64,000 nt of DNA, taken from assembly GCA_977017575.1 (NCBI GenBank), contig CDRNVI010000014.1:372001-436000 (forward strand), read 5' to 3'. The notes under the pieces are model-generated. The model did not search any database and had not been told where the DNA came from. It saw nothing but the letters and a program-made list of their open reading frames with translations. The DNA is from Paramoeba atlantica. Taxonomy: Eukaryota > Protista > Discosea. This document shows positions 18,756 through 64,000 of this stretch, one piece after another. Numbering within the stretch: the first letter of the stretch is position 1; each line of letters starts with the position of its first letter. The translations under genes and the position numbers were made by a program.

Positions 18756-18774
18756 ACCCGGTATAAAACCCTGT

Positions 18775-18802: not shown

Positions 18803-18848
18803 AATTATTTTCAATTTCGTACTAACTGTTACTTTCCCCCATTGGGGC

Positions 18849-26299: not shown

Positions 26300-26317
26300 T
26301 TTTTTTTTTTTTTTTTT

Positions 26318-34133: not shown

Positions 34134-34803
34134 TTTTTTTTTTTTTTTTTTGCAATTAATAAGGGGGGAGAAGTATGAAACGCGGCATTGCCTCTATATT
34201 ACCCAATACATGAACCATGAAGGTCCATTGGGGGGGGTATATGATTTGTAAACAAGCAATCAAATTAGCAATTTCACATGTTGTAGCCCAAAACTAGTAA
34301 TTCAACCTGCCTTAAGTTATTTATGATTCTGATAACAATAATAATAAAAAAGGAAGCAATCCACGCCCAATCCATCCGCGCGTTCCGGACCGGGTCTTTC
34401 GACCTCTCCACGGCCTGACTTGTGAACCCTTCCCTTGCTATACGGGAGGGCGCAGGCGCGGGCCTGTGTCGACAGCGACACGGTCGCGAAACAGGATGCT
34501 GGCCGACGGGGAGGAGATTCACTGCCCGTGTACTACCTCACTTGGGGTACCTAGCCCTCGCGGGCTAGGCGTGAGTATAGACTCTGTCGACACAACCAAC
34601 ATCCGGACCAGAGGATGCAAGAGAGGATAGAAGCGGGTCCGTAGGTATATGTATAGGTCTATGTCGCTACCATTGGATCCGTTGGATCTGGCACGCAGAT
34701 ACGCGAAACCATCATTCTGGCTTGTGATCTCATTAACGCAACGTTCAGCTCCGTAAGGAGTTCATTTCGTGCTTGGCTGCGAGACATGAGTTCTTTCGAC
34801 GCC
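34134..34803 (-). mobile_element. Short 5'-truncated group-2 copy (last ~50 codons, 3' UTR, poly(A)); mosaic of subfamilies
   Basis: The ORF end translates as ASKELMSRSQARNELLTELNVALMRSQARMMVSRICVPDPTDPMVAT*. The structured core is A2/A3-like and the distal tail is B-like. Confidence 0.85.
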
Positions 34804-35331
34804 TTTTTTTTTTTTTTTTTTTGCAGATAATAGGGGGGGAAGAGTACGAGTTCAGACTTTATATATGTATGTACGGTATGACTTTCTCACTTACTTTCCT
34901 ACTTGCTCAACTTCTTTCCCTAACTTTCCCCCATTTTTAAAACGAGCAAAAAATATAACTAGCAAATACATGCTTTCCCATCTTACCCACTTCCCCTTAC
35001 CAATCTTACCAGCTTTCCAGGGAGGGTAAGGTCTCCCTCTGCTAGGAGGGACAGACTTTCCCCTAACCATTCGCGCGTTCCGGACCGGGTCTTTCGACCT
35101 CTCCCAGCTTGCCTTGTTAACCCTTCTCTTGTTGTACGAGAGGGCGCAAGCAATGGGCCTGTGCCGACAGCGGCACGGTCGCGGAGCATGATGCTGGCCG
35201 ACGGGGAGGGAACAAAGCTCCCAGCCCTTGTCTTACCTCACTTGGAGTACCTAGACCTGGCGGACTAGGCGTGAGCGTAGACCCTGTCGGCATCGACCGG
35301 CATCCGGACCGGCAGTTTGTGTCCCCACGGC

Positions 35332-38300
35332 CTATGTCACTACCATAGGATCCGTGGGATCCGGCACGCAGATGCGTGAAACCATCATTCTGGCTTGGGA
35401 ACGCATCAGGGCAATGTTGAGCTCCGTTAGGAGGTCATTTCGCGCTTGGCTCCGTGAGAGAAGCTCTTTTGACGCATTAGCCCGTTGTGCTCCGATATTA
35501 CGGAGAACCGAGAGCGCACTTTCGCTCCAAGAGCCAAAGGATTCGACGACCATAGCTTCGAAAAGGTGTCCCGCATCTTCCGCTTCTTGTCGCTGCCTCG
35601 CCTTCGTCTCGGCGTACTGACCGGCAAAAGATCCTGGTGTCACCAAGCTAGCAGTACGGACTAGGTCCAAATACTTCATTTGCTGTGCATGTGTGACTGC
35701 AAAATCTAATACCATTCCTTGCGCCAGAACTCACTTTTCCAGAGAGCCAGTAGGAAGAAAAACGTCCGCGGGTCTAGTGAGAGCGCCACCTGGGCCTCGG
35801 TTTCCCAGACTCTTTTCTCTTTGTGGTTGAAGAAAGGCCTTGCTGCAGAAAGAAGTGAACTGATGTGCCAGGGCGTTGTGGCGGGATATCAAACCGTGTC
35901 CGTTTTTACATAGTATGGCGTGCTCTCCATTCTTTAGCAATGGGAGGGTGCAGCCTTCTGCTGGGCATGTTCGATCTTCCGGGAAGACGTCCATTCCAAG
36001 CCACCAACGCGAAAGAGTCCTGAACTCAGTTTTAGTAAAAGCGTAACCTCTGCTCTTTGAGGGTACTACGAAGGCCCAGTTTCCTGCTCCTCTTCCCGAT
36101 TGTGAAACCCACCGGGCCCTGGTTCTTGCCTCTGCTTTTCGGTATGCTGCCGTGAACTCCTGCTCTGATATTGCTTCACTCAGATGTTTTTGACGAGGGA
36201 CAATTGTTTCCGGTTCAGAAACATCTGCGGGGAGTGGTGGTACCAGCGATGAGCCGAGTTTGCGCTTTGTGGGCCGGGAACTGGGGCTTCGCTTGTTGTT
36301 TTGGCGTTCCGGTATGAGAGAGGGCGGTTTAAGGATACGTCCCGTCTTTTCATCGACCAGCTCGACTCCTGCCTTATTATTCACGTCGCGAACAGCAGCG
36401 GCAAATCCTTGGGCTTCCGTGGGGTCCCATTTGTCTATTTCTGCGGCGAATGCGACAGAGGAAACGTAGGCGGCCGACTGATGTAGGGCTGAAGATCGGA
36501 GGCCGAATCCCCCGTGACGTTTGGGTCTTTGTATTTGGTCCTTGGCATTAGCATCGAGGGGAAAGAGTGCAATTTCGACAGCCTCTGTTAAGTGTTTGTC
36601 GAGCTCTTGAGGCAGTTCTCCGAGAGCTTGCGGGGGGGTAGTCCTTAGAGCGTGAACCATCTGGCAAAAGCCGGCACATTGTCGTATTAAGGAGAGGGCG
36701 ACTTGGGGATCTTCTATCAGCGTTGTGGCCCCTAGGGTTTCGCTGGCTGGATCGATGGCATGGGTCCTAAGGAAGTCCGTACAGTGTTCTGCCGAGCCAA
36801 CTGGGGTACCTAGGATCTCAAAATTGCCGTCGTACCGTATCTTTTCGCTTGGTATGTCCGGAAATAAAGTCGACGTATGTGCTGATGCTGGGGGTGTGAT
36901 AATCTCGCACTTGGAGAGGTTTAGAAAAAGTCCCCACTTTGGACCGACCTCTGCTAGAATGTCCAAAGCTTTTCTGACTTCCTGGGGTTCCCCTATTAGC
37001 ACCCCGTTGTCGAGGTACCAAAGCTGATTTAGAAGATGAGACCTGGATGCTATGTCCTCCGTTACCTCTGCCAATACCAACGAAAATAATAGGGGGCCCA
37101 GGGGATCTCCTTGCTGTACTCCCTCCGCTGAGGGGATAAAGGAATTATCAAAGGTAAGGCAGCTGGGGTTTGCGTAACACCACTCCACCCATGGTGACAG
37201 CTCGGGAAAATGCTTACGTGTAAGGAAAATAAAAGCTGGTCTGCTCACGTTATTGAATGCGTTTCGGAGGTCTACTTTGCAGAAAGTTATATTGTCGTTT
37301 TCCAGATTGTTGAACATTAGTCGGCGGCAGAGATGAATGACTCGCTCTGATCCGGCAGCCGCTGCAACCCCGTACTGCCTGCGACCGAAGAAGGATCCCG
37401 CCTTTTCTTTTGCGGAGACGCAGGCAGCTTTGCTCACCATCCGTCGAAGGGTTTCTCCTGCTGCAATAGGTCTCACGTCGTCCTCTCCCTTTTCTAGTGC
37501 ACAAAGTCTGGCTCCTGCGAAGAAAGGGTGTGCTTCGTCAGGAGCTTTACCCGCCAGGAGATGATTCGCGAAGGAAGTGAGTGCTGAGAGGGAGTTTAAA
37601 TTATGGTCCACATGTTCTAGGATCGCTGCTTGCAGATGTTCTGGTCGTAGCCCCATGGTTCCAGCTGAAGATCCGCGGCGAAAACCGTTAACAACTTTCT
37701 TTACCTCCGATTCGTCAAGTTGCAAAATGCTTTCTTCCAATGGTGGAAACGGGCAGGTGATGGGATTCCCGTGAGGACTAGGGTGTTTTTCCTCTAGCTT
37801 TTGAAATGTTTCGGCGTTGTAAGGGGCTAGTGGCGCGGCGGTAAGTGCAGCCATTCCCCGGGAGTATTCACCTTGACGGGTTAGAATTTCTGCTCGTATG
37901 GCAGCCTTCTCCGCTTCGTTCTCATTGCTGAGAGTGTTCCCTTTGGAAGGCTTTCTTTCGTGATCAGAGACAGCCTCGTCCCATAGGGTGGCGTGTTGTC
38001 CTGCAATCCAGAGTTCCATTCGCTTCAGGACGTAAGAGGAATATGAAATGTGGGCTTTGCGTCCTCCTCGGTGTGGAGCTGGAAGTACACACTTCGGGAG
38101 CATGGCAAGGAGCGTCCACGCCCTGGCCGAATTTTCATCTACCGCGGAGGAAAGGGCTGCTGTCAGTATCTTAGACCATAAGTGTCGACATCGATGCGGA
38201 ACGTCCTTGCACGTGATTATTGGGGTTGTACACACTGTCTCCAGCGGTGGTAGGTTGTCTGTGCCCTGAACATCGTAAATAGCCTCGCCTAGGCACTCTG

Positions 38301-39057
38301 ATGTTTGTGAGGGTGAAGTTGTTTGCACAGCTCGTCCTTTGCAGTGCTTCGGGTGTGATGTTAACTTGTTGACGTCGTAATGTCGGCCGCATGCGTTGCA
38401 GAGGAATCGTCCCTCTTTCTCCCACCATTCGTTGGACACGCTGTTCCCGTGTCGGTAAGCTACATGGTTGTAGTAAGACTGCCATTGTCCGCCGTGGGCT
38501 TGGGTTGTCCAGGAGCAGTTTTCTGCAGGGCATTCTCGTTGTCCAGGGTGATCTTGGGAGGGCGGTGCTTCGCTGTGGTGTGATCGATGTGGGGTTGTAG
38601 GTGCTATCGTTTCCTCTTTTCTTGGCGTAGCCTTTTCTCGCACTTTTTGATGAGATTTCGCGATTCCTCGAGTGTGCCCCTTAGCGTTTGAAGGTGTCAT
38701 GCATGATTTGCGTCGGGCAAACTTTTTTGTAACGGAGTCTCCGTCGGACTGCGTCTCTTGGCCTGATTCGAGGACTCGTGAATGGATTGTTTCCTCGTCG
38801 CCGATATTTTCTTGTCCTGTGTCGGGTGTTTGTTTTTCGGCTGAAATCAGGGCCGCATTTTTATGCCATCCGTCCGGAATGTTGGTAGGGATCGGTGTTG
38901 CATAGAGCAAATCATTGTACGTACTCGGCTGCTTGATCAGGTGAGCATTTCCAGCGAATTGATCCCAGGATCCTGTTTCGTGTGATACTTCCTCACGTAA
39001 AAACGACTCATCATCCATCGAGGGGGGTGTTTCATGTAAGGGATCGCCTCCCGACAT
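35332..39057 (-). pseudogene. A1 polyprotein: LsmAD-like domain, 2 zinc fingers, RT, CCHC, RLE; interrupted by one TGA
   Basis: WDQFAGNAHLIKQPSTYNDLLYATPI, CPAENC..HVAYRH, CNACG..HC, VRPIAAGE, VDLRNAFN, GVQQGDPLGP, YLDNG (YLDDG in siblings), RPADVF..LDFAV. Confidence 0.88.
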
Positions 39058-39105
39058 TAAAAGGAACCGCGTACCTGGAAAAGAGATGAAATAAGGAAAA
39101 TAATT

Positions 39106-39141
39106 CAACAAGGTACAGAAACTGTATCTTTATCGTTAAAG
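39106..39141 (-). other. Spliced-leader-exon-like 36-mer at the 5' end of A1
   Basis: CTTTAACGATAAAGATACAGTTTCTGTACCTTGTTG shares TAACG, GATACAGTTTCTGTAC and terminal TTG with kinetoplastid SL exons. Confidence 0.8.
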
Positions 39142-39212
39142 TTTTTTTTTTTTTTTGTTCGGGTCGAAGACCCATGGTTCCGGCGGAGGAGCCGCGGTGA
39201 AAACTATTCACG
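39142..39212 (-). other. Poly(A) plus a 57-bp internal fragment of the A2 ORF
   Basis: 39157-39213 matches about 47222-47278 (encodes NSFHRGSSAGTMGLRPE). Confidence 0.85.
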
Positions 39213-39894
39213 GAATTTTACATCATAATATATTTAGAAAAGGAAAACAAATTTCATATTGTTCGCAAAGACATTCGATTAACTCATATACAAACCTATA
39301 CATGATTCCAAGTTATCTCCTATGTCAAAAAAGATGAAACAATGTCACAGCTGCGCAAAAGACAAAACATAAATATCCCATGACAATAACATACACTTAC
39401 CTCTCCCTTTCAACGAGCTTGCGAACGGGTCCAACGCGGGGAGTGGTTTGGGGGCTGGTGGGAGGGGAAACTTTTGTCGAGAACAGTAAACCTGAGTAAT
39501 TGAATTATCAATATTCGAATATCGTACTACGGGATATTTGTATATCAGTATTAACACAATTTTATTGTTTAAAACAAAAACAGGTACAATGCCCCCCGGC
39601 GGGGCATCCTATCCATATCACTTCGAAAATATATTTCTCGTCAAATTCTATCCGTAAACTTCAAGAATTTTACATCATAATATATTTAGAAAAGGAAAAC
39701 AAATTTCATATTGTTCGCAAAGACATTCGATTAACTCATATACAAACCTATACATGATTCCAAGTTATCTCCTATGTCAAAAAAGATGAAACAATGTCAC
39801 AGCTGCGCAAAAGACAAAACATAAATATCCCATGACAATAACATACACTTACCTCTCCCTTTCAACGAGCTTGCGAACGGGTCCAACGCGGGGA
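39213..39894 (-). repeat. Split direct repeat terminus: B2 (39213-39442), A2 (39443-39664), B1 (39665-39894)
   Basis: The two B copies appear identical at offset 452. A2 resembles the 5' end of YR copy 1 (12180-12400): aaactttt(c)gtcg, aaaaaca..gtacaatgccc.ccggc, aattct..cgtaaact. Confidence 0.85.
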
Positions 39895-40773
39895 CCACCC
39901 ATTCGCCAGTCCAACACATACCCACTCGCAGGTACTGCTACTTGCCCCAAGCGAGAAGTTGGGAGGGTGAGGTTCATGTCTTCTCTGCACCTGTTGCATG
40001 AATTGTCGAAACGCGCTTCGCTTAAAGGAACAAGGGGTCCAGGAACACTGAAGCAAAAGCGGTGGAACTCTCGAGCGCCAAAAATCTTTTGCAGCTCGGG
40101 TTTTGCTGGTATTCTTCGAAAGTGCCGGGCAAGCTTGTTCACACAGGAATCGAAGGGTTCAGTTGTACGGATGAGGAATCAGTGGGTCTCTAGAGCGCCA
40201 AAAATCTTTTTCAGCTCGGGCCCTGCTGAGATTCATCAAATGTCTCTGCATCCCTCCCTCACGCAACCGAAGCTCTTGAAGCCCCCTGCTACGATAAACG
40301 TCTATTGCGTGCGTGTGAAAAATGTTCCCAGATGGAGCGATAACTCTAGAGCGCCCAAAACTCCCTTTCAGCTCGGGCTGTCGATCCACCAGGTTCAATT
40401 TCTCCTTACGCTTTTTAAGACTGAGAGGATAAAAATGGAGGCTCTCCAAGAAGACGTGCAGAATGGCAGTATTAGGGAAGTTGGAAAGAAGTGTGAAGGT
40501 GAGTAGTCAAAGGCTGCGAGTTGCAGCAAACAGATCGTGCGTCCTTCTAATGTTGAAGGCTTGAAAGTAGTAGTGCTTGATCTGCTACTCGTATGTGGCG
40601 CCTACTCCAGATACAAGAAAACGGTCTGCCTTATCCCACACACTTAATAACCTGTTTTTTTTTTTTTGATGATTCTATATACCAAATAAGTTATAAATAA
40701 GTTATAAATAAGTTATACTATATTTTTGGAACTACCTATATTTTGAATTAGATGAACTTTCAATTCATTTTGA

Positions 40774-43557
40774 CTACATGCGGCTGTACGGATCGGCAGG
40801 ATTTTCCTTCGAGCAAATATACTGGGCTTTAACGACCAACCCTTTACGCTTTAAATAATCCAACAAACGGCGAAGCTCCGACGTAATACCATCCGAATTA
40901 GACATCTTACGATTTAATGCCGCGACGCAGGAAGTGTTATCAACGAAGACATCTACACACGTATCCCTACCAAAGTGATGGCCAAATTTTTCAAAGGCGA
41001 GGCGAACGGCGCGTGCCTCTGCGCGATTGACTTCATACTCAAAATCAGGTGGCCACCGCGACCCAGCACAAACGACTTGCCCGTAATCCAAATACAGGAC
41101 CGCACCCCATCCCGTAGAGGATGCGTCTGTACACAAAATATGGTTATGCGGCACCGTGTCTGGGTGTGGAGGTGGATCGACGGGAGTTTTATACAACAGC
41201 TTATCTCGCCACTCCGAAAGTGCGATTCGCACCGGTGTCGGTAAGGAAACGGGCTTATCCAGCAAAGTAGGGTCGCGATTTAGATTATTAATCCGACGAC
41301 GAACAATTTTCATTTCCAAGTGATAGTGAGGAAGGTGAACACCCATTACAGCGGAGGCGAAAATAAGGCGGCCTACCCCCGATTCCAAAGATGCATAAGT
41401 GGCTGCAGCAAAGTCATCCTGTCGCAATCGCCGCGAAATTTTGTCTCCTAAAGCCACTTTCCCTTGTCTATGAAAATACTTGATTCCATTGAATGTGTAA
41501 ATCTGTGCGGGCGGCTCTCCACGATCTTTAAACAAGGCATTTAATCTGTCTGCTCTATCATCCACAAAACGAGCGTACTTATTTGCTATCTCATCCCGCG
41601 CGGCAAAACGGATACCATCAATATAAACGTCCAGTCCGGAATAAAAGAACGCGTGCTTTTCGGTACAGTAATTTCTGTCACCTGCTAGAGTTGCTGTCAA
41701 GGTGTGCATTAACTCGGGAGCGCACCGATGCCCCATGGGCATTACAGTCAATTCGTATAGATCCCCTTTTGCGTCTTTAAAGCGAAACTTTTGACGACTT
41801 TCCTCTGGTATTGCGACCTGCCAAAACCCACACGCCAAATCCCGTTTGACGGCACTTTCTTCTTTGGCGCGGTGCAGATAATACGCTGCATGTCTAACGG
41901 GGACATACGGTTCATATATTTCCTTAATGCGATCATTATCTGCCTGCGTCCACGCTATAAAACGACGACGTTCGGAATGTTCATGTTCACCAGGTTCCAC
42001 AACTGTGAAAGGTATCACCCAATCCAAAGACGGCCGCACCTTAGCTTCTTCGTCTGATACTCTGGAAATGAAACCCGCCGCTGCTAATTCCTTTATGTCA
42101 TTGTGCGGCAAAAACGACTTATATAGCGGAATGGTGGATGCCTGTTCCGGTAAACGTAATAAAGTCTCCAATGTCTCATCGAATCGATCACCAGTCGCCT
42201 CATTCATCATTTCTCTCAACTTCTTAACCGACATCCGGGGAATACCCTGCTTGATATGCAATGGAATAGAATAATCCTTCGGTAACGCGACCTTTGACGT
42301 CCTTCGCGTTCTGGTAATAGTGTGACGCACCTTTTCCTGTGGTATGTCATCCAAGAACTTACGAAAAATTTCACTTGCCTCTACATGATCCGTAACTTGC
42401 TGGTTGCTTTCTGCGTGCCCAACACCAACGCGGTGGTAACCGGGTCGGCGTTGTATCGAAGAAGCGAATCGAGGGACTGATGCTTTGCTAATCGTTGTAC
42501 TTCCTCGAGGCGCGTATTGCCCTTCACTACTTCCGCAAACAGCTGTGTTATTGCTCCTCGTTTCGCTGAGTGTGAGCCGAAACCTGTCCCCAGAATTCGG
42601 CGTATCTTCGCATCCACTTCGGATACCGATGTTCTTGACATCGGCCGCAACTGCCCCAGCTTTGTTATGTAATCCGCTAGACGATCCGTGCCCGGCCCTT
42701 CCACAACCGTATACATTGACGCTCGATACGGGTTGTACCGCGATGCTTTGGTCCGTCTGCCCCACCATATCACGATTCTTGTCGAAGACACTTCGTGGAA
42801 TCTGTCGCGTGTGAGCATCGCTGTCTCGGACCACCGGCTTGCCGCCTTCCAACAAAGCAGCAACGTATGTCTTTCGCTGTGAGGAAGGTGGTTCCACAAT
42901 TGTTTCAGTAACTCCGGCGTTAGTGGCGCCATTTGACGGTGCGGCTCCGTCGCACCCTCCGCCATGAGTGACTTGATGTAAAAACGTAGCGGGTTCGTTC
43001 CCTTGCCGGCTAAGTTGAGTAGGGACGCCAAACTTCCGGCGTATGACAACTTTCCTTGGATTTTGATTGGTAAACTTGCGATGAAAGTTACTGCATGAAT
43101 TGGGGTGATTTCGATTTGTTTCCAATGACAAAAGGCCGTCAACCTTTCCCACAACCTTGCCCTCGCCTGCCAAGTCGATGCGCTCCACATATTTCCCATC
43201 GCATCCAATGCCTGCCTGATTTCCGGGGTCATTGCTGTGACCCCCATTAGTAATTTCACTAGATTTCCGCGCGCCGTATCCGCTACTTGCAAACTCAAAG
43301 TTCCGCCGTAAAAATTCTCGCATCTCACGTATCTCCCTGATAAATTCTGCACATTGCGAACATCCACTGGTACAATGTTCTCTTCCACTCTTCTCCTTTT
43401 GGGAACTTGCATTAAAAGTGTCGTTCTGTTTCGTTTGAATGTTACTATAGAACTGGCCGTTAGGGTGTGGTTTTGTCAGAAACTCTTGCTGCTGTGGGCA
43501 GGGCCAGCCACCCGTCCTCGAAAATCCTGCTGGAATCGCTTCGGGCAGTTGCGCCAA
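40774..43557 (-). CDS. Pol (RT plus RNase H) of YR copy 2, intact 927 aa
   Basis: RRRFIAW, KRDLACGFWQ, PMGHRCAP, YIDGI, CTDASSTGWG, EARAV, VDNTS, NPADPYSR. Confidence 0.88.
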   Translation of the reverse strand: MAQLPEAIPAGFSRTGGWPCPQQQEFLTKPHPNGQFYSNIQTKQNDTFNASSQKEKSGREHCTSGCSQCAEFIREIREMREFLRRNFEFASSGYGARKSSEITNGGHSNDPGNQAGIGCDGKYVERIDLAGEGKVVGKVDGLLSLETNRNHPNSCSNFHRKFTNQNPRKVVIRRKFGVPTQLSRQGNEPATFLHQVTHGGGCDGAAPSNGATNAGVTETIVEPPSSQRKTYVAALLEGGKPVVRDSDAHTRQIPRSVFDKNRDMVGQTDQSIAVQPVSSVNVYGCGRAGHGSSSGLHNKAGAVAADVKNIGIRSGCEDTPNSGDRFRLTLSETRSNNTAVCGSSEGQYAPRGSTTISKASVPRFASSIQRRPGYHRVGVGHAESNQQVTDHVEASEIFRKFLDDIPQEKVRHTITRTRRTSKVALPKDYSIPLHIKQGIPRMSVKKLREMMNEATGDRFDETLETLLRLPEQASTIPLYKSFLPHNDIKELAAAGFISRVSDEEAKVRPSLDWVIPFTVVEPGEHEHSERRRFIAWTQADNDRIKEIYEPYVPVRHAAYYLHRAKEESAVKRDLACGFWQVAIPEESRQKFRFKDAKGDLYELTVMPMGHRCAPELMHTLTATLAGDRNYCTEKHAFFYSGLDVYIDGIRFAARDEIANKYARFVDDRADRLNALFKDRGEPPAQIYTFNGIKYFHRQGKVALGDKISRRLRQDDFAAATYASLESGVGRLIFASAVMGVHLPHYHLEMKIVRRRINNLNRDPTLLDKPVSLPTPVRIALSEWRDKLLYKTPVDPPPHPDTVPHNHILCTDASSTGWGAVLYLDYGQVVCAGSRWPPDFEYEVNRAEARAVRLAFEKFGHHFGRDTCVDVFVDNTSCVAALNRKMSNSDGITSELRRLLDYLKRKGLVVKAQYICSKENPADPYSRM
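42381..43412 (-). CDS. Tyrosine recombinase of YR copy 2, fully nested in another frame of pol
   Basis: AASRWSE, RTKAS, HSAKRG, AKHQ, LLRY; clearly homologous to 9977..10957. Confidence 0.88.
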   Translation of the reverse strand: MQVPKRRRVEENIVPVDVRNVQNLSGRYVRCENFYGGTLSLQVADTARGNLVKLLMGVTAMTPEIRQALDAMGNMWSASTWQARARLWERLTAFCHWKQIEITPIHAVTFIASLPIKIQGKLSYAGSLASLLNLAGKGTNPLRFYIKSLMAEGATEPHRQMAPLTPELLKQLWNHLPHSERHTLLLCWKAASRWSETAMLTRDRFHEVSSTRIVIWWGRRTKASRYNPYRASMYTVVEGPGTDRLADYITKLGQLRPMSRTSVSEVDAKIRRILGTGFGSHSAKRGAITQLFAEVVKGNTRLEEVQRLAKHQSLDSLLRYNADPVTTALVLGTQKATSKLRIM

Positions 43558-44171
43558 ATGTGATCAGGCGACCGACATCCAAAGCATAATAAATTTCGTC
43601 GTGGAGGATATGCATTATGTCGCGGTGGGAACTGATTGGGACGCGAAACTTGCATAGATGGTGGAGCAGAGAAAGACCGAACACGTGCATATTGCTTCTG
43701 TCGCTCAACCAATTGATCATTCACGTGATGATAAAACTTGTCGTCCGGACGGATATCCTTCTCCATTTTTTGATGGACCAAGTCCACATCTACGCGGCGT
43801 GCTCGCCAGTACGCGTCAAGTGTCTGCACAATCCCACGTCCCATTTCGAGGTACACACCTTTATTCCAGTTGGGTATCAAACGCGCAAAAATAATCCACT
43901 TGCAAAATACAGAATTAAACAAACGCTCTTGCTGCTTAATAAACGTGCGATCATGATAAAACTGATTAACGCGTAAACCAAACTCAGGCGCATCCCGAAG
44001 CTCGCGAATCAGGTCCCTAGTGCGAAAACCATCGTCATCCGCCGCATTAATCCAAGGCTCGTAAGTCAAAGGTTCGTAGGCGTTCAATGCATTCGGGTCG
44101 AGTAATCTGCCTTCCCGTAAAGCCTCTGAAATTGGTGCGGCACCAGTTCTCCCCCCAATTACCTCTTGCAT
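43476..44171 (-). CDS. Gag-like protein of YR copy 2 (N-terminally incomplete)
   Basis: YEPLTYEPWINA..LREAPEFGLR shared with copy 1; CFGCRSPDHIWRNC knuckle. Confidence 0.8.
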   Translation of the reverse strand: MQEVIGGRTGAAPISEALREGRLLDPNALNAYEPLTYEPWINAADDDGFRTRDLIRELRDAPEFGLRVNQFYHDRTFIKQQERLFNSVFCKWIIFARLIPNWNKGVYLEMGRGIVQTLDAYWRARRVDVDLVHQKMEKDIRPDDKFYHHVNDQLVERQKQYARVRSFSAPPSMQVSRPNQFPPRHNAYPPRRNLLCFGCRSPDHIWRNCPKRFQQDFRGRVAGPAHSSKSF

Positions 44172-44614
44172 GCCGGCAGCCTCATTACGTGAGCCCAGCT
44201 GATGCGTTTCATCGGTGAGTAATTGCGAAGAGTTCTTTTTTTTAGCCTTGCAACTAGCGGTACTTCCTCAGAAACTAGGCGGCCTAGGATTGATCTCCTC
44301 GACTTTGAAGCAGAAATACTACTTTGAAACTGCCCGGAAATCTATTGTTGATTTTTTTTTTTTTTTTTGCAATTAATAAGGGGGGAGAAGTATGAATCGC
44401 GGCATTGCCTCTATATTTTGACCCAGTAGACGAACCAAGTAGGTCCATTGGGGGGGGGTATACGAGTTGAAAACAAGCAATCAAATTAGCAATTCTTTTT
44501 CTGTCCACAGATGTACCTTTTTTCTCAGCCCAAAACTAGCAATTTAGTCTCCCCTAAGTATATACTACAAACAAGAAAAACAGTAAAAATTAAAACAAGC
44601 AATCCATGCCCAAT

Positions 44615-44848
44615 CCATTCGCGCGTTCCGGACCGGGTCTTTCGACCTCTCCACGGCCTGACTTGTGAACCCTTCCCTTGTTATATGGGAGGGCGCAGGC
44701 GCGGGCCTGTGTCGACAGCGACACGGTCACGAAACAGGATGCTGGCCGACGGGGAGGAGATTCACTACCCGTGTACTACCTCACTTGGGGTACCTAGCCC
44801 TCGCGGGCTAGGCGTGAGTATAGACTCTGTCGACCCGACCAGCATCCG
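44615..44848 (-). ncRNA. Conserved structured RNA module in the group-2 3' UTR (other copies near 34370, 35070, 49077, 51105, 55530 partial, 55850, 60275, 62135)
   Basis: Stems with GNRA loops on the element sense strand (GGTC-GAAA-GACC; CCTAGCCC-GCGA-GGGCTAGG) and compensatory changes between subfamilies. Confidence 0.7.
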
Positions 44849-44921
44849 GGCTCACATTAGAGAACCTCACTCATCAGAGCAAGGCTTGAGAATAGGTGGG
44901 TAAGACACAGTGGGTAGGGGC

Positions 44922-48716: not shown

Positions 48717-48763
48717 TGAGAGTAACCCGTACCTCGGAAAGAGATGAAATAGAAAATAGAAAT

Positions 48764-48799
48764 CAACAAGGTACAGAAACTGTATCTTTATCGTTAAAG
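48764..48799 (-). other. SL-like 36-mer at the 5' end of A2
   Basis: Identical to 39106-39141; preceded on the minus strand by poly(A). Confidence 0.8.
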
Positions 48800-55306: not shown

Positions 55307-55357
55307 GGGGAAGGACGCTAATCCCCGGGGAGTAACTAAAGAAAGGAAAAAAAGGTT

Positions 55358-55393
55358 CAACAAGGTACAGAAACTGTATCTTTATCGTTAAAG
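55358..55393 (-). other. SL-like 36-mer at the 5' end of B
   Basis: Identical 36-mer; preceded on the minus strand by poly(A) then GA. Confidence 0.8.
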
Positions 55394-55395
55394 TC

Positions 55396-55676
55396 TTTTT
55401 TTTTTTTTTTTTTTTTTACATTTTATATAGCAATTTCATATTTTGGAGCCCAAAACTAGCAATTCGACCTCCCGTAAGTATAAGAACAATAAAAACAATA
55501 ACAATAAAAACAAGCAATCTATGCCCAATCCATTCGCGCGTTCCGGACCGGGTCTTTCGACCTCTCCACGGCCTGACTTGTGAACCCTTCCCTTGTTATA
55601 CAGGAGGGCGCAGGCGCGGGCCTGTGTCGACAGCGACACGGTCGCGAAACAGGATGCTAGCCGACGGGGAGGAGAT
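55396..55676 (-). mobile_element. Isolated 3' UTR fragment of A3 type with poly(A)
   Basis: Near-duplicate of about 55750-55993, bounded by T-runs. Confidence 0.8.
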
Positions 55677-56131
55677 TTTTTTTTTTTTTTTTTTTTTTTG
55701 TTATGTGTGTGTAGAATTTTTTTTTTTTTTTACAAGCAATCAAATTAGCAATTTCATATTTTGGAGCCCAAAACTAGTAATTCGATCTCCCGTAAGTATA
55801 AGAACAATAAAAACAATAACAATAAAAACAAGCAATCTATGCCCAATCCATTCGCGCGTTCCGGACCGGGTCTTTCGACCTCTCCACGGCCTGACTTGTG
55901 AACCCTTCCCTTGTTATATGGGAGGGCGCAGGCGCGGGCCTGTGTCGACAGCGACACGGTCGCGAAACAGGATGCTAGCCGACGGGGAGGAGATTCACTG
56001 CCCGTGTACTACCTCACTTGGGGTACCTAGCCCTCGCGGGCTAGGCGTGAGTATAGACTCTGTCGACCCGGCCAGCACCCGTCTTGGATATTATGGCGTC
56101 TTCGTGCTGAAACTGGACTGTCAGTAGAGGC

Positions 56132-59100
56132 TTAAGCCTCTACCAAAGGATCCGCTGGGTCCTCTACGCGGATGCGCGAAACCATCATCCTGGCTTGAGA
56201 ACGCATTAGCGTCACGTTCAGATCCGTTAGGAGATCGTTTCGCGCTTGGTCTCGTGAAAGGAGCCCTTTGGATGCATTCGCCCGTTGAGTTCCGATGTCC
56301 CGGAGTAACGCTAGCGCACTCTCGCTCCAGGAACCAAAGGATTCCACCACCATCGCTGTGAAGAGGTGTCCTGCTTTTTCTGCTTCTTGTCGCTGTCGCG
56401 CCTTGGTCTCCGCGAAGTGCTCGGCAAAAGACCCCGGGGTCACCCAGCTAGCATTGTGGACTGAGTCCAAATACTTTGTTTGCTGTGCGTGAGTGACCGC
56501 AAAATCTAGGACCATGCCTTGCGCTAAAGATCCTTTGGCGATGGAGGCAGTTGGCAGAAATACGTCCGCTGGTCTCGTGAGAGCCCCCCCAGGACCCCGA
56601 TTTCCCAAACTCTTCTCTCTCTGTGGCGCCAGGAAGGCTCTGCTGCAGAACGATGTAAATTGTTGGGCCAGAGCGTTGTGCCGTGAGATGATACCATGGC
56701 CGTTCTTGCAGAGCAAAGCGTGCTCTCCATTCTTGAGCAAGGGAAGGGTGCACCCGTCAGCTGGGCAAGGCCGATCTTCGGGGAAGACGTCCATGCCTAG
56801 CCACCAGCGTGTTAGGGTACGAAACTCCGTGTGGGTGAAAGCGTAGCCTCTGGTCTTGGAGGGAGTTGCGAAAGCCCAGTTTCCGGCCCCTTTTCCGGAC
56901 TGCGAGATCCATCGCGCCCGCGTTCTTGCGTCTGCCTTTGAATATGCCGTTTGAAATTCCCTATCCGAGATAGCTTGGCTGAGATGTTTTTGCCTCGGGA
57001 TGATCTTTTCCTGATCCGTCGAGACCGGGAGAAGGGAGTGATTGAGGGATAGTGCGAGTTTTCTTTTCGCTGGGCGGGAAAGGATGCTCCGATTTGCATG
57101 ATATTCACCAGGCACGCTAGGTTTGGTAATGCGTCCAGTGTATGGATCAACCAGATCAGTCCCAACTTTGTCATTTATGTCATGTGCTGAGCTGGAAAAT
57201 CCCTCAGCTTCTGTGGGGTCCCAGTTGTCCAAGCTAGCGGCGTGCGCGACGGAAGAAACGTAGGCTGCTGACTGGTGGAGAATTGATGAGCGAAGTCCGA
57301 ACCCGCCGTGGCGTTTTGGTCGTTGTATTTGGTCGCGAGCGGCGACGCCTAAGGGAGAAATTGCGTGCTCCACGGCCTGGACTAGATGAGAGTCAAGTTT
57401 TTGGCATAATTCTCCAAGGGCTTGGGGAGGAGTGGTACGCAGTGCGTACACCATCTGACAAAACCCCGAACATTGCCGTATTAGTGCGAGAGCTATTTGG
57501 GGATCTTCTAACACAGCAGTAGCTTCTAATGTTTCGCGGGCTGGTTCAATCGCGTGTGTCATGAGAAACTCCGCACAGTGTTCCGCAGAGCCTATTGGGC
57601 TTCCAAGAATGTCGAAGTTCCCGTCGTACCGTATTTTATCACTGGGGATGTCAGGAAAGAAAACGGATGTATGAGCTGATGCTGGGGGGGTAATGATCTC
57701 GCACTTGGAGAGATTCAGGAAGAGTCCCCACTTCGGTCCTATCTCGTCGAGGACGTCTAGGGCTTTACGGACTTCTTTGGGATCACCTACAAGCACACCG
57801 TCATCTAAATACCATAATTGTGTTCGTAGGTTAGAATTTGATGCAATTTCTTCTGTTACCTCTGCTAACACCAAAGAGAAGAGGAGTGGGCCCAGAGGGT
57901 CTCCTTGTTGCACTCCTTCTGCCGAGGGGATAAAATCATCGCCGAATGTGAGACAGCTATGATTGGCATAACACCATTCTACCCATGGGGATAGTTCAGG
58001 GAAATGCTTTCGTGTGAGGAAGATGAAGACGGGTCGGCTCACGTTATTAAAGGCGTTCCGAAGATCCACCTTACAGAACGTTATGTTCTCATTTTCTTCA
58101 TTATTTCTCATTAGACGGCGACAAAGGTGTATCACCCTTTCCGCCCCAGCAGACGCTGCGACTCCGTATTGACGACGTCCAAAGAAGGATCCTGCTTTTT
58201 CTTTTATCGAAAGGCATACTGCCTTGCTCACCAGGCGTCTAAGGGTTTCCCCGGCAGCGATAGGCCGCACGTCATCTTCCCCTTTTTCGAGTGCGCATAG
58301 CCGTGCCCCTGCAAAAAAAGGTTGCACTTCGTCTGGGGCTTTGCCAGCTAGAAGATGGTTTACGAAGGAAGTGAGCGTCGTAAGAGGATTCATATTCTGG
58401 TCGACGTGCTCTTGAAGCGCTGTTTGGAGGTGTTCAGGCCGGAGCCCCATAGTCCCAGCAGAGGATCCGCGATGGAAGGTATCTACTGCTTTTCTTACCT
58501 CGGATTCGTCCAGTTTTAAAGCTTCTTCTTCCAGGGGAGGTAGGGGGCACGAGATGGGATTACCATGGGGGCTGGGGTGTTTTTCCTGCAGCTTTAGCAG
58601 GGTTTCCTCGCTGTATGGTGCGAGTGGAGCTGCAGTAAGGGCAGCCATGCCTCGGGAAAATTCTCCTTGGCGAACCAGAATTTCAGCCCGTATTGCAGCC
58701 TTGTCTTCTTCACCCTCAATCTCATTATTCGGCACTTTTGAGCGCTTCCTGTCATGCTCCGAATTTGCTTGGGCCCATAGGGTGGTATATTGGCCTTGTA
58801 TCCAAAGTTCCATTCGCTTTGAGATGTAGGAGGTATAGGACTTGTGAGCTTTACGGCCTCCTCGGTACGGGGCTGGTAGGACGCATTTCGGAAGCAAGGC
58901 AAGAAGGGTCCAGGCTCTCAGTGAGTTTTCGTTTACCGCGGTGGAGAGGGCTGCGGTAAAAATTCTGGTCCACAGATATCGACATCGGTGTGGGACATCC
59001 TTGCACGTGCTTATTTGAGTCGTGCAAACTTCCTCTAGGGACGGTAGACTATGCGTACCTTGCATATCGTACATGGCTTCTCCGGACTCTGACAGCTGTG

Positions 59101-59932
59101 AAGGCTGCTGTGGTTGTGAGGGCGGCTGCGAGGAGGGTGGTGTAGATTGCATTTTACAATGATTCAAATGAGAAGTTTTCTTGCTAATATCGTAATGACG
59201 ACCGCATGCGTCGCAGAGAAATCGTCCTTCCTTTGTCCACCAGTCATTGGGTATGTTATTTCCGTGTCGGTAAGCAACGTGGTTGTAGTACGACTGCCAT
59301 TGACCTCCATGGGCACGAGTTTTCCAAATACAGTTTTCTGCGGGGCACTCCCTTTGTGTCGGACGGTTTTGGGAAGATGGAAACGTGAGAACTGGTTCGC
59401 TCGTCGAAGGTGGGATTTCAAGGGAAGTTCCTTGTACTATTTGGCGTGGAGAGTTGTTTTCGGGGTTATGTTCCGTCGCTTCCCCTTTTCGAGGTGTAGC
59501 TGGTTCGCGCGCTTTTCGATGAGACTTTACGATTCCCCGATTCCCTTTGACGCTTGGGGGTGTGGAAGATGGTTGGCATCGAGTAAACTTTTTAGTGATA
59601 GTGTTGCTATCAGATTGCATTTTTTGGTGTCCATGATGTAATCTGATGACTCGTGAGTGGGTTGTTTCCTCATCGCTACTATCTACCTGTCCCGTATCAC
59701 GTGTCTGGTTCTCAGTTGAGATCAAGGCGGCGTTCATGTGCCATTCTTCCGGAATGTTCGCAGGAATAGGGGTCGTGTAGAGCAATTCGTTGTACGTACT
59801 CCGTTGCTTAATGAGATGTGCGTTTCCAGCAAACTGGTCCCAGGATCCTCTATTGTGTACTGCTTCCTCTTGTAAAAATGAATCGTCGTCCATCGGCGGA
59901 GGTGAGGCTTTGAGAAGATCGTCTTCAGTCAT
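56132..59932 (-). CDS. A3 polyprotein (LsmAD-like, 2 zinc fingers, RT, CCHC, RLE), 1266 aa
   Basis: Same motif set as A2, no stop codons. Confidence 0.92.
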   Translation of the reverse strand: MTEDDLLKASPPPMDDDSFLQEEAVHNRGSWDQFAGNAHLIKQRSTYNELLYTTPIPANIPEEWHMNAALISTENQTRDTGQVDSSDEETTHSRVIRLHHGHQKMQSDSNTITKKFTRCQPSSTPPSVKGNRGIVKSHRKAREPATPRKGEATEHNPENNSPRQIVQGTSLEIPPSTSEPVLTFPSSQNRPTQRECPAENCIWKTRAHGGQWQSYYNHVAYRHGNNIPNDWWTKEGRFLCDACGRHYDISKKTSHLNHCKMQSTPPSSQPPSQPQQPSQLSESGEAMYDMQGTHSLPSLEEVCTTQISTCKDVPHRCRYLWTRIFTAALSTAVNENSLRAWTLLALLPKCVLPAPYRGGRKAHKSYTSYISKRMELWIQGQYTTLWAQANSEHDRKRSKVPNNEIEGEEDKAAIRAEILVRQGEFSRGMAALTAAPLAPYSEETLLKLQEKHPSPHGNPISCPLPPLEEEALKLDESEVRKAVDTFHRGSSAGTMGLRPEHLQTALQEHVDQNMNPLTTLTSFVNHLLAGKAPDEVQPFFAGARLCALEKGEDDVRPIAAGETLRRLVSKAVCLSIKEKAGSFFGRRQYGVAASAGAERVIHLCRRLMRNNEENENITFCKVDLRNAFNNVSRPVFIFLTRKHFPELSPWVEWCYANHSCLTFGDDFIPSAEGVQQGDPLGPLLFSLVLAEVTEEIASNSNLRTQLWYLDDGVLVGDPKEVRKALDVLDEIGPKWGLFLNLSKCEIITPPASAHTSVFFPDIPSDKIRYDGNFDILGSPIGSAEHCAEFLMTHAIEPARETLEATAVLEDPQIALALIRQCSGFCQMVYALRTTPPQALGELCQKLDSHLVQAVEHAISPLGVAARDQIQRPKRHGGFGLRSSILHQSAAYVSSVAHAASLDNWDPTEAEGFSSSAHDINDKVGTDLVDPYTGRITKPSVPGEYHANRSILSRPAKRKLALSLNHSLLPVSTDQEKIIPRQKHLSQAISDREFQTAYSKADARTRARWISQSGKGAGNWAFATPSKTRGYAFTHTEFRTLTRWWLGMDVFPEDRPCPADGCTLPLLKNGEHALLCKNGHGIISRHNALAQQFTSFCSRAFLAPQREKSLGNRGPGGALTRPADVFLPTASIAKGSLAQGMVLDFAVTHAQQTKYLDSVHNASWVTPGSFAEHFAETKARQRQEAEKAGHLFTAMVVESFGSWSESALALLRDIGTQRANASKGLLSRDQARNDLLTDLNVTLMRSQARMMVSRIRVEDPADPLVEA

Positions 59933-59978
59933 GAGAAAGAACCGCGTACCTGGAAAAGATGAAATAAAGAAAATAATT

Positions 59979-60014
59979 CAACAAGGTACAGAAACTGTAT
60001 CTTTATCGTTAAAG
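59979..60014 (-). other. SL-like 36-mer at the 5' end of A3
   Basis: Identical 36-mer directly after the poly(A) of the upstream copy. Confidence 0.8.
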
Positions 60015-61550
60015 TTTTTTTTTTTTTTTTTTATAATAGGGGGGGAAGAGTACGAGTTCAGACTTTATATATGTATGTACGGTATGACTTTCTCACTTAC
60101 TTTACTACTTGCTCAACTTCTTTCCCTAACTTCCCCCCATTTTGAAAACGAGCAAAAAATATAACTAGCAAATACATGCTTTCCCATCTTACCCACTTCC
60201 CCTTACCAATCTTACCAGCTTTCCAGGGAGGGTAAGGTCTCCCTCTGCTAGGAGGGACAGACTTTCCCCTAACCATTCGCGCGTTCCGGACCGGGTCTTT
60301 CGACCTCTCCCAGCTTGCCTTGTTAACCCTTCTCTTGTTGTACGAGAGGGCGCAAGCAATGGGCCTGTGCCGACAGCGGCACGGTCGCGGAGCATGATGC
60401 TGGCCGACGGGGAGGGAACAAAGCTCCCAGCCCTTGTCTTACCTCACTTGGAGTACCTAGACCTGGCGGACTAGGCGTGAGCGTAGACCCTGTCGGCATC
60501 GACCGGCATCCGGACCGGCAGTTTGTGTCCCCACGGCCTATGTCACTACCATAGGATCCGTGGGATCCGGCACGCAGATGCGTGAAACCATCATTCTGGT
60601 TTGGGAACGCATCAGGGCAATGTTGAGCTCCGTTAGGAGGTCATTTCGCGCTTGGCTCCGTGAGAGAAGCTCTTTTGACGCATTAGCCCGTTGTGCTCCG
60701 ATATTACGGAGAACCGAGAGCGCACTTTCGCTCCAAGAGCCAAAGGATTCGACGACCATAGCTTCGAAAAGGTGTCCCGCATCTTCCGCTTCTTGTCGCT
60801 GCCTCGCCTTCGTCTCGGCGTACTGACCGGCAAAAGATCCTGGTGTCACCAAGCTAGCAGTACGGACTAGGTCCAAATACTTCATTTGCTGTGCATGTGT
60901 GACTGCAAAATCTAATACCATTCCTTGCGCCAGAACTCCCTTTTCCAGAGAGCCAGTAGGAAGAAAAACGTCCGCGGGTCTAGTGAGAGCGCCACCTGGG
61001 CCTCGGTTTCCCAGACTCTTTTCTCTTTGTGGTTGAAGAAAGGCCTTGCTGCAGAAAGAAGTGAACTGATGTGCCAGGGCGTTGTGGCGGGATATCAAAC
61101 CGTGTCCGTTTTTACATAGTATGGCGTGCTCTCCATTCTTTAGCAATGGGAGGGTGCAGCCTTCTGCTGGGCATGTTCGATCTTCCGGGAAGACGTCCAT
61201 TCCAAGCCACCAACGCGAAAGAGTCCTGAACTCAGTTTTAGTAAAAGCGTAACCTCTGCTCTTTGAGGGTACTACGAAGGCCCAGTTTCCTGCTCCTCTT
61301 CCCGATTGTGAAACCCACCGGGCCCTGGTTCTTGCCTCTGCTTTTCGGTATGCTGCCGTGAACTCCTGCTCTGATATTGCTTCACTCAGATGTTTTTGAC
61401 GAGGGACAATTGTTTCCGGTTCAGAAACATCTGCGGGGAGTGGTGGTACCAGCGATGAGCCGAGTTTGCGCTTTGTGGGCCGGGAACTGGGGCTTCGCTT
61501 GTTGTTTTGGCGTTCCGGTACTTAGTACAGAAAAACGAAGAATGGATGCG
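60015..61550 (-). mobile_element. 5'-truncated copy of A1 (lacks the A1 nonsense codon)
   Basis: Nearly identical to 34820-36315; GGA where A1 has TGA. Confidence 0.9.
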
Positions 61551-61790
61551 CGGTTCGATAATACAAGGGAGACCAGCTTTGGAGCACAAATCTGCGAGGT
61601 ACCTCACTATGTGTGAGTGCTTTCTGGTGCAATTCATGCCCGAGCACCGGGAGCATCCTGCGACGTGTGGTATAATGCTGGTAGGAGATTCATGGCCACA
61701 GCATCCAGGGCATATAACATCGGCCGGTGCGTTATGTAATCCGATACACCATTTTTTCGCTGAGCTCCCCCCACGATGAGGTTTAAGTAC
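61551..61790 (-). mobile_element. Fragment of the 3262-type CCHC/RLE region fused to the truncated A1 copy
   Basis: Encodes CSGMNCTRKHSHIVRYLADLCSKAGLPCIIEPRIHSSFFCTK, matching ORF 3262..3999. Confidence 0.8.
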
Positions 61791-61837
61791 TGATTTTGTT
61801 CCTCACAGGATAGTCGCTTTTCCCATATGTACTAATT

Positions 61838-64000
61838 ATTTTTTTGGTGACCTTATAGAAGAAAGTAAGAGGTAATAAAACAACAAGCAACAACTCTCCT
61901 TTTTTTTTTGCGATTAATAAGGGGGGAGAAGTATGAAACGCGGCATTGCCCCTATATTACCCAATACATGAACCATGAAGGTCCATTGGGGGGGGGTATA
62001 TGATTTGTAAACAAGCAATCAAATTAGCAATTTCACATGTTGTAGCCCAAAACTAGTAATTCAACCTGCCTTAAGTTATTTATGATTCTGATAACAATAA
62101 TAATAAAAAAGGAAGCAATCCACGCCCAATCCATCCGCGCGTTCCGGACCGGGTCTTTCGACCTCACCACGGCCTGACTTGTGGACCCTTCCCTTGTTAT
62201 ATGGGAGGGCGCAGGCGCGGGCCTGTGTCGACAGCGACACGGTCGCGAAACAGGAAGCTGGTCGACGGGGAGGAGATTCACTACCCGTGTACTACCTCAC
62301 TTGGGGTACCTAGCCCTCGGCGAGCTAGGCGTGAGCATAGACTCTGTCGACTCGACCAGCTTCCAGATCAGTTGTTTCCGAGGGCGCTAACGTGGGCCTG
62401 TGCCGACAACGGTGTGGTTAGGAAACGATTATCCCACGAGGGCTACTTACTCCGTTACCAAGCTATTGCTCGATCAGCGGAGTGGGAAGGTCGTCTACCG
62501 GCATTCTTGATATCATCATACGTGCCTGGCGACGCATCAGCGTTATGTTCAAGTCTGTGACGAGCTGTAGCGTAGCTGCTCCGTCACTGAGAATGCCGTT
62601 GGACGCTTTGGCCCGACGTTCTCCTACTTTCCGAAGTACTGCTAAGGCACTAGAGCTCCAAGAGCCGTAGCTCTCTACGACCATTGCTGTGAAGTCGCTT
62701 CCCGCCGACTCAGATTCACGGCGCTGTCGAGCTTTCTGGTCGGAGGCGTAGTGCTCAGCGAAAGACCCCGCGGCCACCCAGCTAGCATTTCGGACTGTGT
62801 CCGTGTATTTTGATTGCTGGGCGTGAGTGACCGCGAAGTCAAGCACTATAGGTTTTCCGAGGAAGAGGCTCGGCATGAAGACGTCCCCCGGTCTGGTCAA
62901 GGCGCCCCCTGGGCCCCTATTCCCGAGGCTTTTCTCGCGCTGGGGTGCTAGGTGGGCCTGGCTGCAGGTGGCATCAAACTGATCGACTAACGAGTGGTGT
63001 CGCCGGATGATACCTTCCCCATGCTTACACGTGAGAGCATGGTCTCCGTGTATGTCAAGGGGGAGCGTGCAGTTCTCCCTGGGGCATTTTGATTCTTCCC
63101 CGTAGACTGGTACCCCCAACCACCAGCGGGACAAGGTACGGAATTCTGTTGGGGTGAAGGCGTGACCAGTGTCTTTGGATGGCGTTACGAAAGCCCAGCT
63201 ATTGGCCCCTTTCCCGCTCTGGGAGACCCAACGTGCGCGAGTCCTGGCGTCAGCCTTTTCATAAGCTCGCGAAAATTCCGTAGCTGAAATCGCGTGGCTT
63301 ATGTCCCTTTGGAGGGGGATACCCTTTTTCGCCCAGTCCGGCAGCTTCGCGTCAAAGCAATCCTCCGTTGCATACAATGGGCATGACGTAGGGGGGAGAT
63401 CATCGGGTGACAAGGGGGGGCGATCGTGTGGAAGGGAAGGGGGATTCGCAGATGAAGTAGGATCATGGGTATCCGGCTGGCGTGGGCGCTTTGCGGGGCG
63501 ATGCCTCGGAGGAAATTCTTCGCATTTGTGGTGCGGGATAGTGCACACACGGCCACTTGAGTTGAGAAGCTTGGTGCCAACCTTCGCGTTTATGTCGTCA
63601 ATAGATGATAGAAAGCCTTCTACTTCGGATGGATCCCAAGAGTCCATGTCTGCTGCAAAAGCAACCGAGGAAACGTAGGCTGAGGTTGCGTGAAAGGATG
63701 CTGACCGTAACCCGAATCCTCCGTGTTTTTTCAGGCGCTGAATTTGGGACCGTGCAGAGGGAGGCAAGGGGCATAAACATGACTCTACCGCGTGCATGAG
63801 AAAATCATCCAGACGCTCGCATAAAAGTGTAAGTGATTGTGGTGGGGTCGTGCGGAGAGCGTGGACCATTTTGCAGAACCCGGCGCATTGCCGAATAAGC
63901 GCCATTGAAACCTGTGGGTCTTTGATTCTAGTTATAGCTTCTAACGCCGTTTCTGCTGGTTCAATGGCGTGCGTTGTCAGGTATTCGGAGCAATACTCTG
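61838..64000 (-). mobile_element. Second copy of element B (3' part; continues beyond the window)
   Basis: Near-identical to 50815-52970 with a few substitutions; ORF 62463..63905; same 3' extension. Confidence 0.92.

Follow-up and report, generated by a model that had tools for sequence, protein, structure and literature searches.

A polar stack of spliced-leader-headed R2-type retrotransposons in the Paramoeba atlantica assembly, possibly grown by insertion at poly(A) tails

Composition of the stack

The DNA analysed here, referred to below as the window, comprises 64,000 nucleotides (nt) of the Paramoeba atlantica assembly GCA_977017575.1 and corresponds to positions 372001–436000 of the 519,506-bp contig CDRNVI010000014.1 (C14). 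Between 33.9 and 64 kb, about 13 units lie head to tail on the minus strand, among them four full-length elements (A1, A2, A3, and B) that code for a reverse transcriptase (RT) and start with the same 36-nt sequence, identified below as part of the spliced leader (SL) of the host. Each of these heads adjoins the poly(A) tail of the preceding unit, and we favour the view that new copies insert, in the same orientation, at the tails of older retroelements. Positions 1–64000 are those of the window, and "ext" coordinates refer to the window together with the remainder of C14 to the contig end (147,506 bases).

The 36-mer has four exact matches in the window, all on the minus strand, where none would be expected by chance (Table 1). 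Upstream of each match is a poly(A) run of 13–23 bases, separated from it by a linker of 0–2 bases (GA at 55394-55395, ahead of the SL copy of B); downstream follow a pyrimidine-rich 5' untranslated region (UTR) and an open reading frame (ORF) of 1126–1309 amino acids (aa). The placement of the 36-mer directly after a tail at the four full-length heads had been pointed out in a first-pass annotation of the sequence, and is seen at every one of them. A GT intron follows the 36-mer in none of the four copies, no SL gene promoter region lies ahead of them, and no SL RNA gene was found within the window or the 83.5 kb beyond it; as had been described, the exon-like motif runs straight into the 5' UTR.

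The order of the minus-strand units was established by self-BLAST and a list of all A runs. Every unit has the same direction, all but element X carry a 3' tail, the poly(A) tails of the elements are 13–29 A long, and same-strand units continue to about 137 kb of the ext sequence. The first-pass annotation had counted about 11 same-direction units at positions 34134–64000. The polarised, multi-family stack is upheld, with the reservations that the unit at 44351-39220 belongs to another class and has no tail, and that the copy at 61520 meets a different repeat. The chain does not stop at 34134, since a further tailed, truncated copy is found at 34133-33926. At the other side, the full-length copy B' extends beyond the window to 66421, where an SL head follows A28. 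The ORF of X has weak RT and RNase H matches, below the Pfam cut-offs, and X is probably a later insertion into the chain. The ORF of A1 ends about 140 codons early, within the endonuclease domain.

Table 1. Minus-strand units between 33.9 and 64 kb of the window, listed in their 5' to 3' order
Unit	Position	Strand	Details
B', 3' part (2.15 kb of a full-length copy)	61847–64000	minus	99.9% identical to B over 4575 nt; A10 tract 61900-61909 and 54-nt 3' extension in common with B
Downstream flank of B'	61521–61846	minus	includes 225 nt that match part of the 2.14-kb tandem G units at 100% identity
A1-type copy, 5'-truncated	60015–61520	minus	A1 positions 2828-4315, 99.7% identical; A18 tail 60015-60032
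A3, full-length	55717–60014	minus	SL 59979-60014; ORF 59932-56132 (1266 aa); A15 tail 55717-55731; self-BLAST span 60014-55732
Micro-unit of 17 nt	55676–55716	minus	A24 tail
A3-like 3' UTR fragment, 250 nt	55675–55418	minus	A22 tail 55396-55417
B, full-length	50789–55395	minus	GA linker; SL 55358-55393; ORF from ATG 55306 to 51434; A10 tract 50871-50880; 54-nt read-through extension 50817-50870; A28 tail 50789-50816; self-BLAST span 55393-50817
A2-type copy, 5'-truncated	48800–50788	minus	A2 positions 2477-4427, 100% identical to the adjoining A2; three additional bases CTT ahead of the copy (50785); tail A23-C-A13 at 48800-48836
A2, full-length	44352–48799	minus	SL 48764-48799; ORF 48716-44922 (1264 aa); A17 tail 44352-44368; self-BLAST span 48799-44369
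X, other class (5.1 kb)	39220–44351	minus	ORF 43323-40777; 230-bp internal direct repeats; no poly(A) tail
A-type ORF fragment, 63 nt	39142–39219	minus	97% identical to A2 at 47284-47222; A15 tail 39142-39156
A1, full-length	34804–39141	minus	SL 39106-39141; ORF from ATG 39057 to 35731; A19 tail 34804-34822; self-BLAST span 39141-34823
T1, B-like copy, 5'-truncated	34134–34803	minus	about 650 nt; 3' 470 nt 96% identical to B; A18 tail 34134-34151
Copy of a further poly(A) family, 5'-truncated	33916–34133	minus	at least 30 genomic copies at 97–100% identity; A10 tail 33916-33925

The first 34 kb of the window contain four more RT genes on both strands, so the entire window is a retroelement nest. 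One of them, a 1578-aa ORF of another family on the plus strand (18757-23585), has a 5'-truncated SL copy at its head and no upstream tail; the others lie at 14908-17610 (minus), 23654-26413 (minus), and 31018-32943 (plus). The G units, a piece of which (225 nt, 61521-61745) is present in the window, form a tandem of four 2.14-kb copies at ext 97786-104216 (L036:3786-10000 and L033:1-216). They have the same 3' sequence and tails of 18–25 A; TAGAAT comes next in three of the four, and an A2 head follows the fourth tail. At ext 116155-116290 (L037:2155-2290), an 18-nt unit is repeated about seven times immediately after a B-type tail.

Element proteins and the spliced leader

The RVT_1 domain was detected in all four ORFs (E 1e-15 to 1e-18), and their RT is of the non-LTR/group II type. 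Sequence matches in the PDB were weak, the best being R2 proteins (E 1.8e-5). The A2 ORF comprises an LsmAD-like motif, two zinc-finger-like motifs, the RT, a CCHC motif, and an R2-type endonuclease, and the Cys/His positions of the two N-terminal zinc-finger-like motifs are conserved in an alignment of the four ORFs. In the C-terminal 259 residues, CCHC, RHN, E, RPAD, and D follow in succession; the order CCHC / RHD/N / E / R/KPD / D/E has been described for the restriction-like endonucleases of SLACS, CRE, and MoTeR (PMC12857005). Residues C49, C54, H64, C68, R77, H78, E99, R113, P114, D116, and D136 of this domain are invariant or nearly so among 45 homologues. A sequence-only PDB search with the C-terminal domain gave no match. 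Its predicted structural model (pLDDT 91) returned R2 proteins as the top seven Foldseek matches (E 4e-6 to 3e-3; sequence identity to these structures 15–17% in the matched domain), followed by other PD-(D/E)XK nucleases. The elements are R2-superfamily retrotransposons without long terminal repeats (long interspersed nuclear elements, LINEs), with an RT and an R2-type restriction-like endonuclease.

The homologue search yielded no named protein of the CRE clade; the named matches were from sponge, dinoflagellate, diplonemid, moth, tardigrade, and cuttlefish, and the protein atlas matched unnamed RT clusters only. Traits of the CRE type that are present are the N-terminal zinc-finger-like motifs and the poly(A) tail. 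The earlier designation of the elements as CRE-like is unsupported beyond the RT and the R2-type endonuclease; the habit that defines the clade, insertion inside SL genes, is not seen here.

Pfam matches to LsmAD at the N-termini of the A2, B, and A3 ORFs (window 48490-48640, 55000-55130, and 59660-59800) are weak and recurrent (E 5.5e-5 to 0.07), and the region holds the conserved motif GSWDQF ... STYN ... LYTTPIP. The C-terminal domain of PABP (PF00658) is present in two distant homologues, P0020 and P0021. These features hint at a link of the ORFs to poly(A)-bound ribonucleoproteins. At the other end of the elements, the last 250–480 nt of A and B are 85–98% identical (3' UTRs at 44369-44850, 50881-51340, and 55732-56080), while DNA identity in the ORFs is 64–66%. 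The 3' modules have 20–50 times the unitig depth of the element body, so short 3' modules are very abundant.

A pattern search of the genome for AA plus the 36-mer followed by a GT intron found 38 places, all on other contigs, in line with what the first-pass annotation had anticipated of an SL exon. The exon is 38 nt long, and the 36-mer corresponds to its bases 3–38. Arrays of SL RNA genes are located on contigs C97, C107, C11, C74, C3, and others, and the SL repeat was in tandem with a 5S rRNA gene in the one repeat that was read. The 158-nt SL transcript has a fold z-score of -5.8 relative to shuffled controls, with the splice donor within the first stem. Judged by this gene anatomy, the 36-mer is the spliced leader of the host. 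Its core differs from the one that PMC7859406 quotes for the prokinetoplastid SL.

Among the 38 SL genes with an intron, at least 34, those with upstream sequence read, retain the native 11 bases ahead of a whole exon. Genome-wide counts are 364 for the 5' 26-mer of the SL, about 326 of them outside SL genes, and at least 700 for the 3' 23-mer. Several unrelated retroelement families are headed by the non-gene copies, in which the SL is often truncated at its 5' end. The SL is thus part of the element RNA and not a remnant of the target. The bases just ahead of CTTT vary among heads (A, T, C, or GA), as would be expected if each cDNA had ended at the capped end of the RNA, SL base 1; SL bases 1–2 (AA) are indistinguishable from the preceding A run.

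Some SL-containing sites have other arrangements. In two arrays (G000:C74:104148-121530 and C97:20860-28649), SL RNA gene repeats about 2.6–2.7 kb apart are interrupted by three gaps of 7.3–7.7 kb, and an insert of about 4.6–5.2 kb may lie elsewhere in the SL repeat unit, not at the exon. At L001-L004 (G000:C1:8252-26552), two direct copies of a 34-nt sequence enclose a bare SL (TGA plus the 36-mer) within a larger unit, of which there are four repeats at a period of about 5,093 bp; the arrangement resembles insertion of nothing but the SL, accompanied by a long target duplication. At L054:7380-7620 of the related ENA assembly, a tail is followed by the last three bases of the SL exon and the SL intron without its first G, resembling a 5'-truncated retrocopy of the SL RNA precursor set against a tail. 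At L028:1470-1540, two inverted SL copies lie back to back, forming a palindrome.

The route by which the leader came to the element RNA leaves room for an alternative. The genomic copies have TTG, and not AG, ahead of the 5' UTR, so that a new SL would not be spliceable at the same place by the usual rule, and the SL/UTR junction is fixed in each family. The internal acceptor in the 5' UTR of family A (a pyrimidine tract and AG before GTACG) was not found joined to the SL (0 matches), no SL-less source copy was found, and the 36-mer is identical across families whose 5' UTRs are only 65–75% alike. One could hypothesise that the DNA-encoded leader marks the start of transcription, with either the SL copy acting as an internal initiator or the conserved 3' UTR and tail of the upstream neighbour acting as a driver. 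Such an encoded start would account for the fixed, AG-less junction, the unused internal acceptor, and the identity of the 36-mer across diverged UTRs, and it has precedents in the internal promoter Pr77 of the L1Tc/ingi elements (PMC1874656, PMC8190864) and in HeT-A, where the 3' UTR of the upstream neighbour promotes "in tandem" (PMC5537684). If so, the RNAs would begin with a host-like leader without trans-splicing, and stacking would be part of expression rather than a by-product of landing. We give this idea little weight.

How the units came to be stacked

Family statistics were obtained from about 280 kb of this genome and about 100 kb of a related assembly. Unit boundaries were checked by hand for copies with an identity of 90% or more to the four references, since boundaries from automated BLAST pieces are unreliable for diverged families; genome-wide statements rest on pattern counts and cross-matched coordinate lists. 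A tail adjoins the SL head in 18 of 21 cases with an R2-like ORF versus 0 of 22 in other families (Fisher p = 2e-9), many of which carry a full SL and still have no tail upstream. Among the young A1, A2, A3, and B copies in the 147 kb, complete or truncated, 16 of 18 5' ends meet a tail, and nine of the copies concerned are truncated and have no SL at all. The upstream tails derive from several families.

The start of the tail varies by a few bases between copies, and B and B' share the 54-nt read-through beyond an encoded A10 tract; it follows that the tails were put on at the RNA stage. Read most simply, the copies are reverse transcripts of RNAs with an SL at the start and a poly(A) tail at the end. 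The genome has 215 tails of the A2/B type, grouped on its larger contigs into zones of 30–180 kb such as C2 556-589 kb, C12 732-763 kb, and C14 406-485 kb. There are about 80 tail–SL junctions, differing in tail length, linker, and neighbours, and in about half of them 1–6 extra bases (T, C, GA, CGT, or GGGGAG) separate the tail from the SL.

Because truncated, SL-less copies meet tails, several chains end without an SL head, and the tail at the head depends on the family, we favour tail-directed, same-orientation insertion over SL-directed self-targeting or template jumping, with a probability of roughly 0.55. Both the order of insertion and the tail, rather than the head, as the recognised feature are what we infer from the layout of the copies. 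The RNA template would have the host SL at its start and, at its end, a poly(A) tail acquired post-transcriptionally; a complete copy would accordingly bear SL bases 3–38 at its 5' end, the AA of bases 1–2 merging with the upstream A run. Target-primed reverse transcription would take place beside or inside the poly(dA:dT) tract of an older retroelement, where the nicked T-strand could prime on the element RNA's own tail. The new unit would then share the orientation of the old one, and its 5' end, whether whole or truncated, would abut what is left of the old tail. Each insertion would supply a new tail, and nests could accrete and stay polar. If each insertion creates landing pads in this way, tail zones of 30–180 kb are to be expected.

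Several observations weigh against this interpretation. Of the loci used for the family statistics, thirty were picked for holding an SL. Two R2-like heads, at ext 116541 and 136376, have no adjoining tail, and the 5' end of the truncated A1-type copy at 61520 meets the G fragment, not a tail. At the level of a single junction, tail-directed and head-directed insertion look alike. Chain ends are flanked by repeats (a 274-nt stretch following the 34134 tail and the flank after ext 80199), and no unique pre-insertion site was recovered. Partial SL duplications upstream of the heads at L007 and L010, as well as the CTT before 50785, also fit cuts inside the SL. The public runs consist of short unitigs broken at repeats, none of which crosses a junction (breaks at 50779-50824, 55366-55430, and 55665-55743).

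This last point, that no public read set spans a junction, is also what speaks for an artefact of assembly or library, in which concatenated cDNA or chimeric reads would have produced the stack. Such an artefact is unlikely, and in our estimation hardly credible: the locus lies within a 519.5-kb contig, the roughly 80 junctions are diverse in tail length, linker, and neighbours, unitigs of two runs independently join the SL to a B-type 5' UTR, and a separate long-read ENA assembly (ERZ24900291), 97% identical in an A2-type copy, has a tail, a short linker, and an SL head at three places. If the junctions are genuine, the endonuclease could alternatively recognise the 5' boundary of the SL, or of its own R2-like head, and insert just upstream, so that a fresh SL regenerates the target and the array extends upstream, much as the first-pass annotation had proposed. 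In keeping with this, SL base 3 always comes next after the tail at the four junctions, partial SL copies lie between tail and full SL in L007 and L010-L014, the CTT before the truncated copy at 50785 is the start sequence of the SL, and four of five runs of truncated units in this chain finish at an SL head. However, the model predicts an SL head (or a later insertion) after every tail and an SL head at every chain end, while, of 49 cross-matched tails, only 9 have the SL next to them, no SL head closes the chains that end at 34134, ext 80199, 107569, 109895, and 113461, and SL-less copies meet tails. Nor do SL sequences elsewhere behave as targets, given the native upstream sequence retained by 34 or more of the 38 SL genes with an intron and the lack of an upstream tail at all 22 full or partial SL heads of other families. 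We consider the SL as a regenerated target to be unlikely.

A stack could also arise within a single event, if the RT, having reached the capped 5' end of its template, switched to the 3' end of a second polyadenylated RNA and the concatenated cDNA was inserted. Bibillo and Eickbush reportedly observed in 2002 that the R2 RT jumps between template ends in vitro, and end-to-end jumps would fit the extra 1–6 bases at about half of the junctions, the 100% identity of the truncated A2 copy to the adjoining full A2, and the short tail–filler–tail motifs. Yet only about 2 of 18 young units meet non-tail DNA, so a single event would have to bring in some nine units on cDNAs tens of kilobases long; for internal units that are truncated, the jump would have to start inside a template, and adjoining units come from families 25–35% apart in sequence. 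As the source of the whole stack, template jumping seems doubtful; it is a likely contributor that may well add to sequential insertion rather than replace it. The layout also raises the question of a telomere-type or centromere-type structure with a function for the chromosome, as in HeT-A/TART, GilM/GilT, or Zepp. The polar, 5'-truncated, multi-family arrangement and the concentration of tails in one or a few zones of 30–180 kb per large contig are reminiscent of such structures. Against this, the window is 83.5 kb from the nearer contig end, which consists of a 10-bp satellite, (AGAAAGAGGA)n (L039:3200-3506), the far end being ordinary sequence; TTAGGG is absent from the window and from the 83.5 kb to the contig end, and nests occupy internal positions on many contigs. 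The comparison applies to this locus, as a four-unit TTAGGG run occurs at just one place in the entire assembly, in which telomeres are not assembled. A chromosomal function of the array is very unlikely, and the chromosome-end role suggested earlier is unsupported for this locus.

Apart from insertion at tails, a 238-nt sequence is found in identical form and with the same end base at window 33616-33853 (minus) and L037:2305-2541 (plus). It is followed by an R2-like SL head in L037 and by a 5'-truncated element of another family in the window. The shared sequence may be a second, sequence-specific landing site.

Relation to known elements and implications

The trypanosomatid elements SLACS, CZAR, CRE1, and CRE2 share with those described here a single ORF, zinc-finger-like motifs, an RT, a C-terminal restriction-like endonuclease, a poly(A) tail, an association with the SL, and a kinetoplastid-type host (PMC12278014). 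CRE elements occupy one fixed position inside the exons of SL RNA genes and have SL gene repeats as flanks (PMC12278014), whereas here the SL genes are intact, the whole SL constitutes the 5' end of the element, and copies are dispersed in nests. With the R2 elements of insects, birds, and turtles (8gh6, 9nl3, and 9dou), the common feature is the architecture of RT, CCHC motif, and PD-(D/E)XK endonuclease; R2 differs in that it targets a single site in 28S rDNA, lacks an SL head, and usually ends without a long poly(A) tail.

In layout, the closest parallels are arrays of other LINEs. HeT-A, TART, and TAHRE also form head-to-tail, same-direction, multi-family arrays with variable 5' truncation, in which a 3' end lies directly upstream of the next 5' UTR (PMC5537684), but they belong to the Jockey clade and add to chromosome ends, while the array in the window is internal and R2-like. 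GilM and GilT of Giardia and MoTeR and FoTeR of fungi are endonuclease-bearing LINEs placed with the CRE clade that likewise occur in same-direction arrays (PMC10088271, PMC12857005, PMC5537684); these are located at or in telomere repeats, none of which is found near this locus. Zepp of Chlorella and Coccomyxa builds clusters of nested, 5'-truncated LINE copies that are mostly chromosome-internal (PMC3446292), but it represents a different LINE clade, lacks an SL head, and is gathered in a single cluster on each chromosome. In the SL-relic retrogenes of dinoflagellates, a DNA-encoded 5' SL is the mark of copying from processed RNA (PMC12014239). Those are host genes and not autonomous, whereas here the SL/UTR junction is fixed in each family and has no AG acceptor. 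Traits of the SL-relic type present in the stack are the DNA-encoded 5' SL and a tail at variable 3' sites.

In kinetoplastids, transcription units are long, and trans-splicing supplies every mRNA with its 5' end. A mobile element in such a host needs a means to obtain a defined, translatable 5' end. If poly(A) tails serve as landing pads, a simple self-reinforcing rule would explain both polar nests of up to 100 kb and the avoidance of single-copy genes. Insertion at tails would also represent a target habit for R2-type endonucleases of which we found no description in the literature searched.

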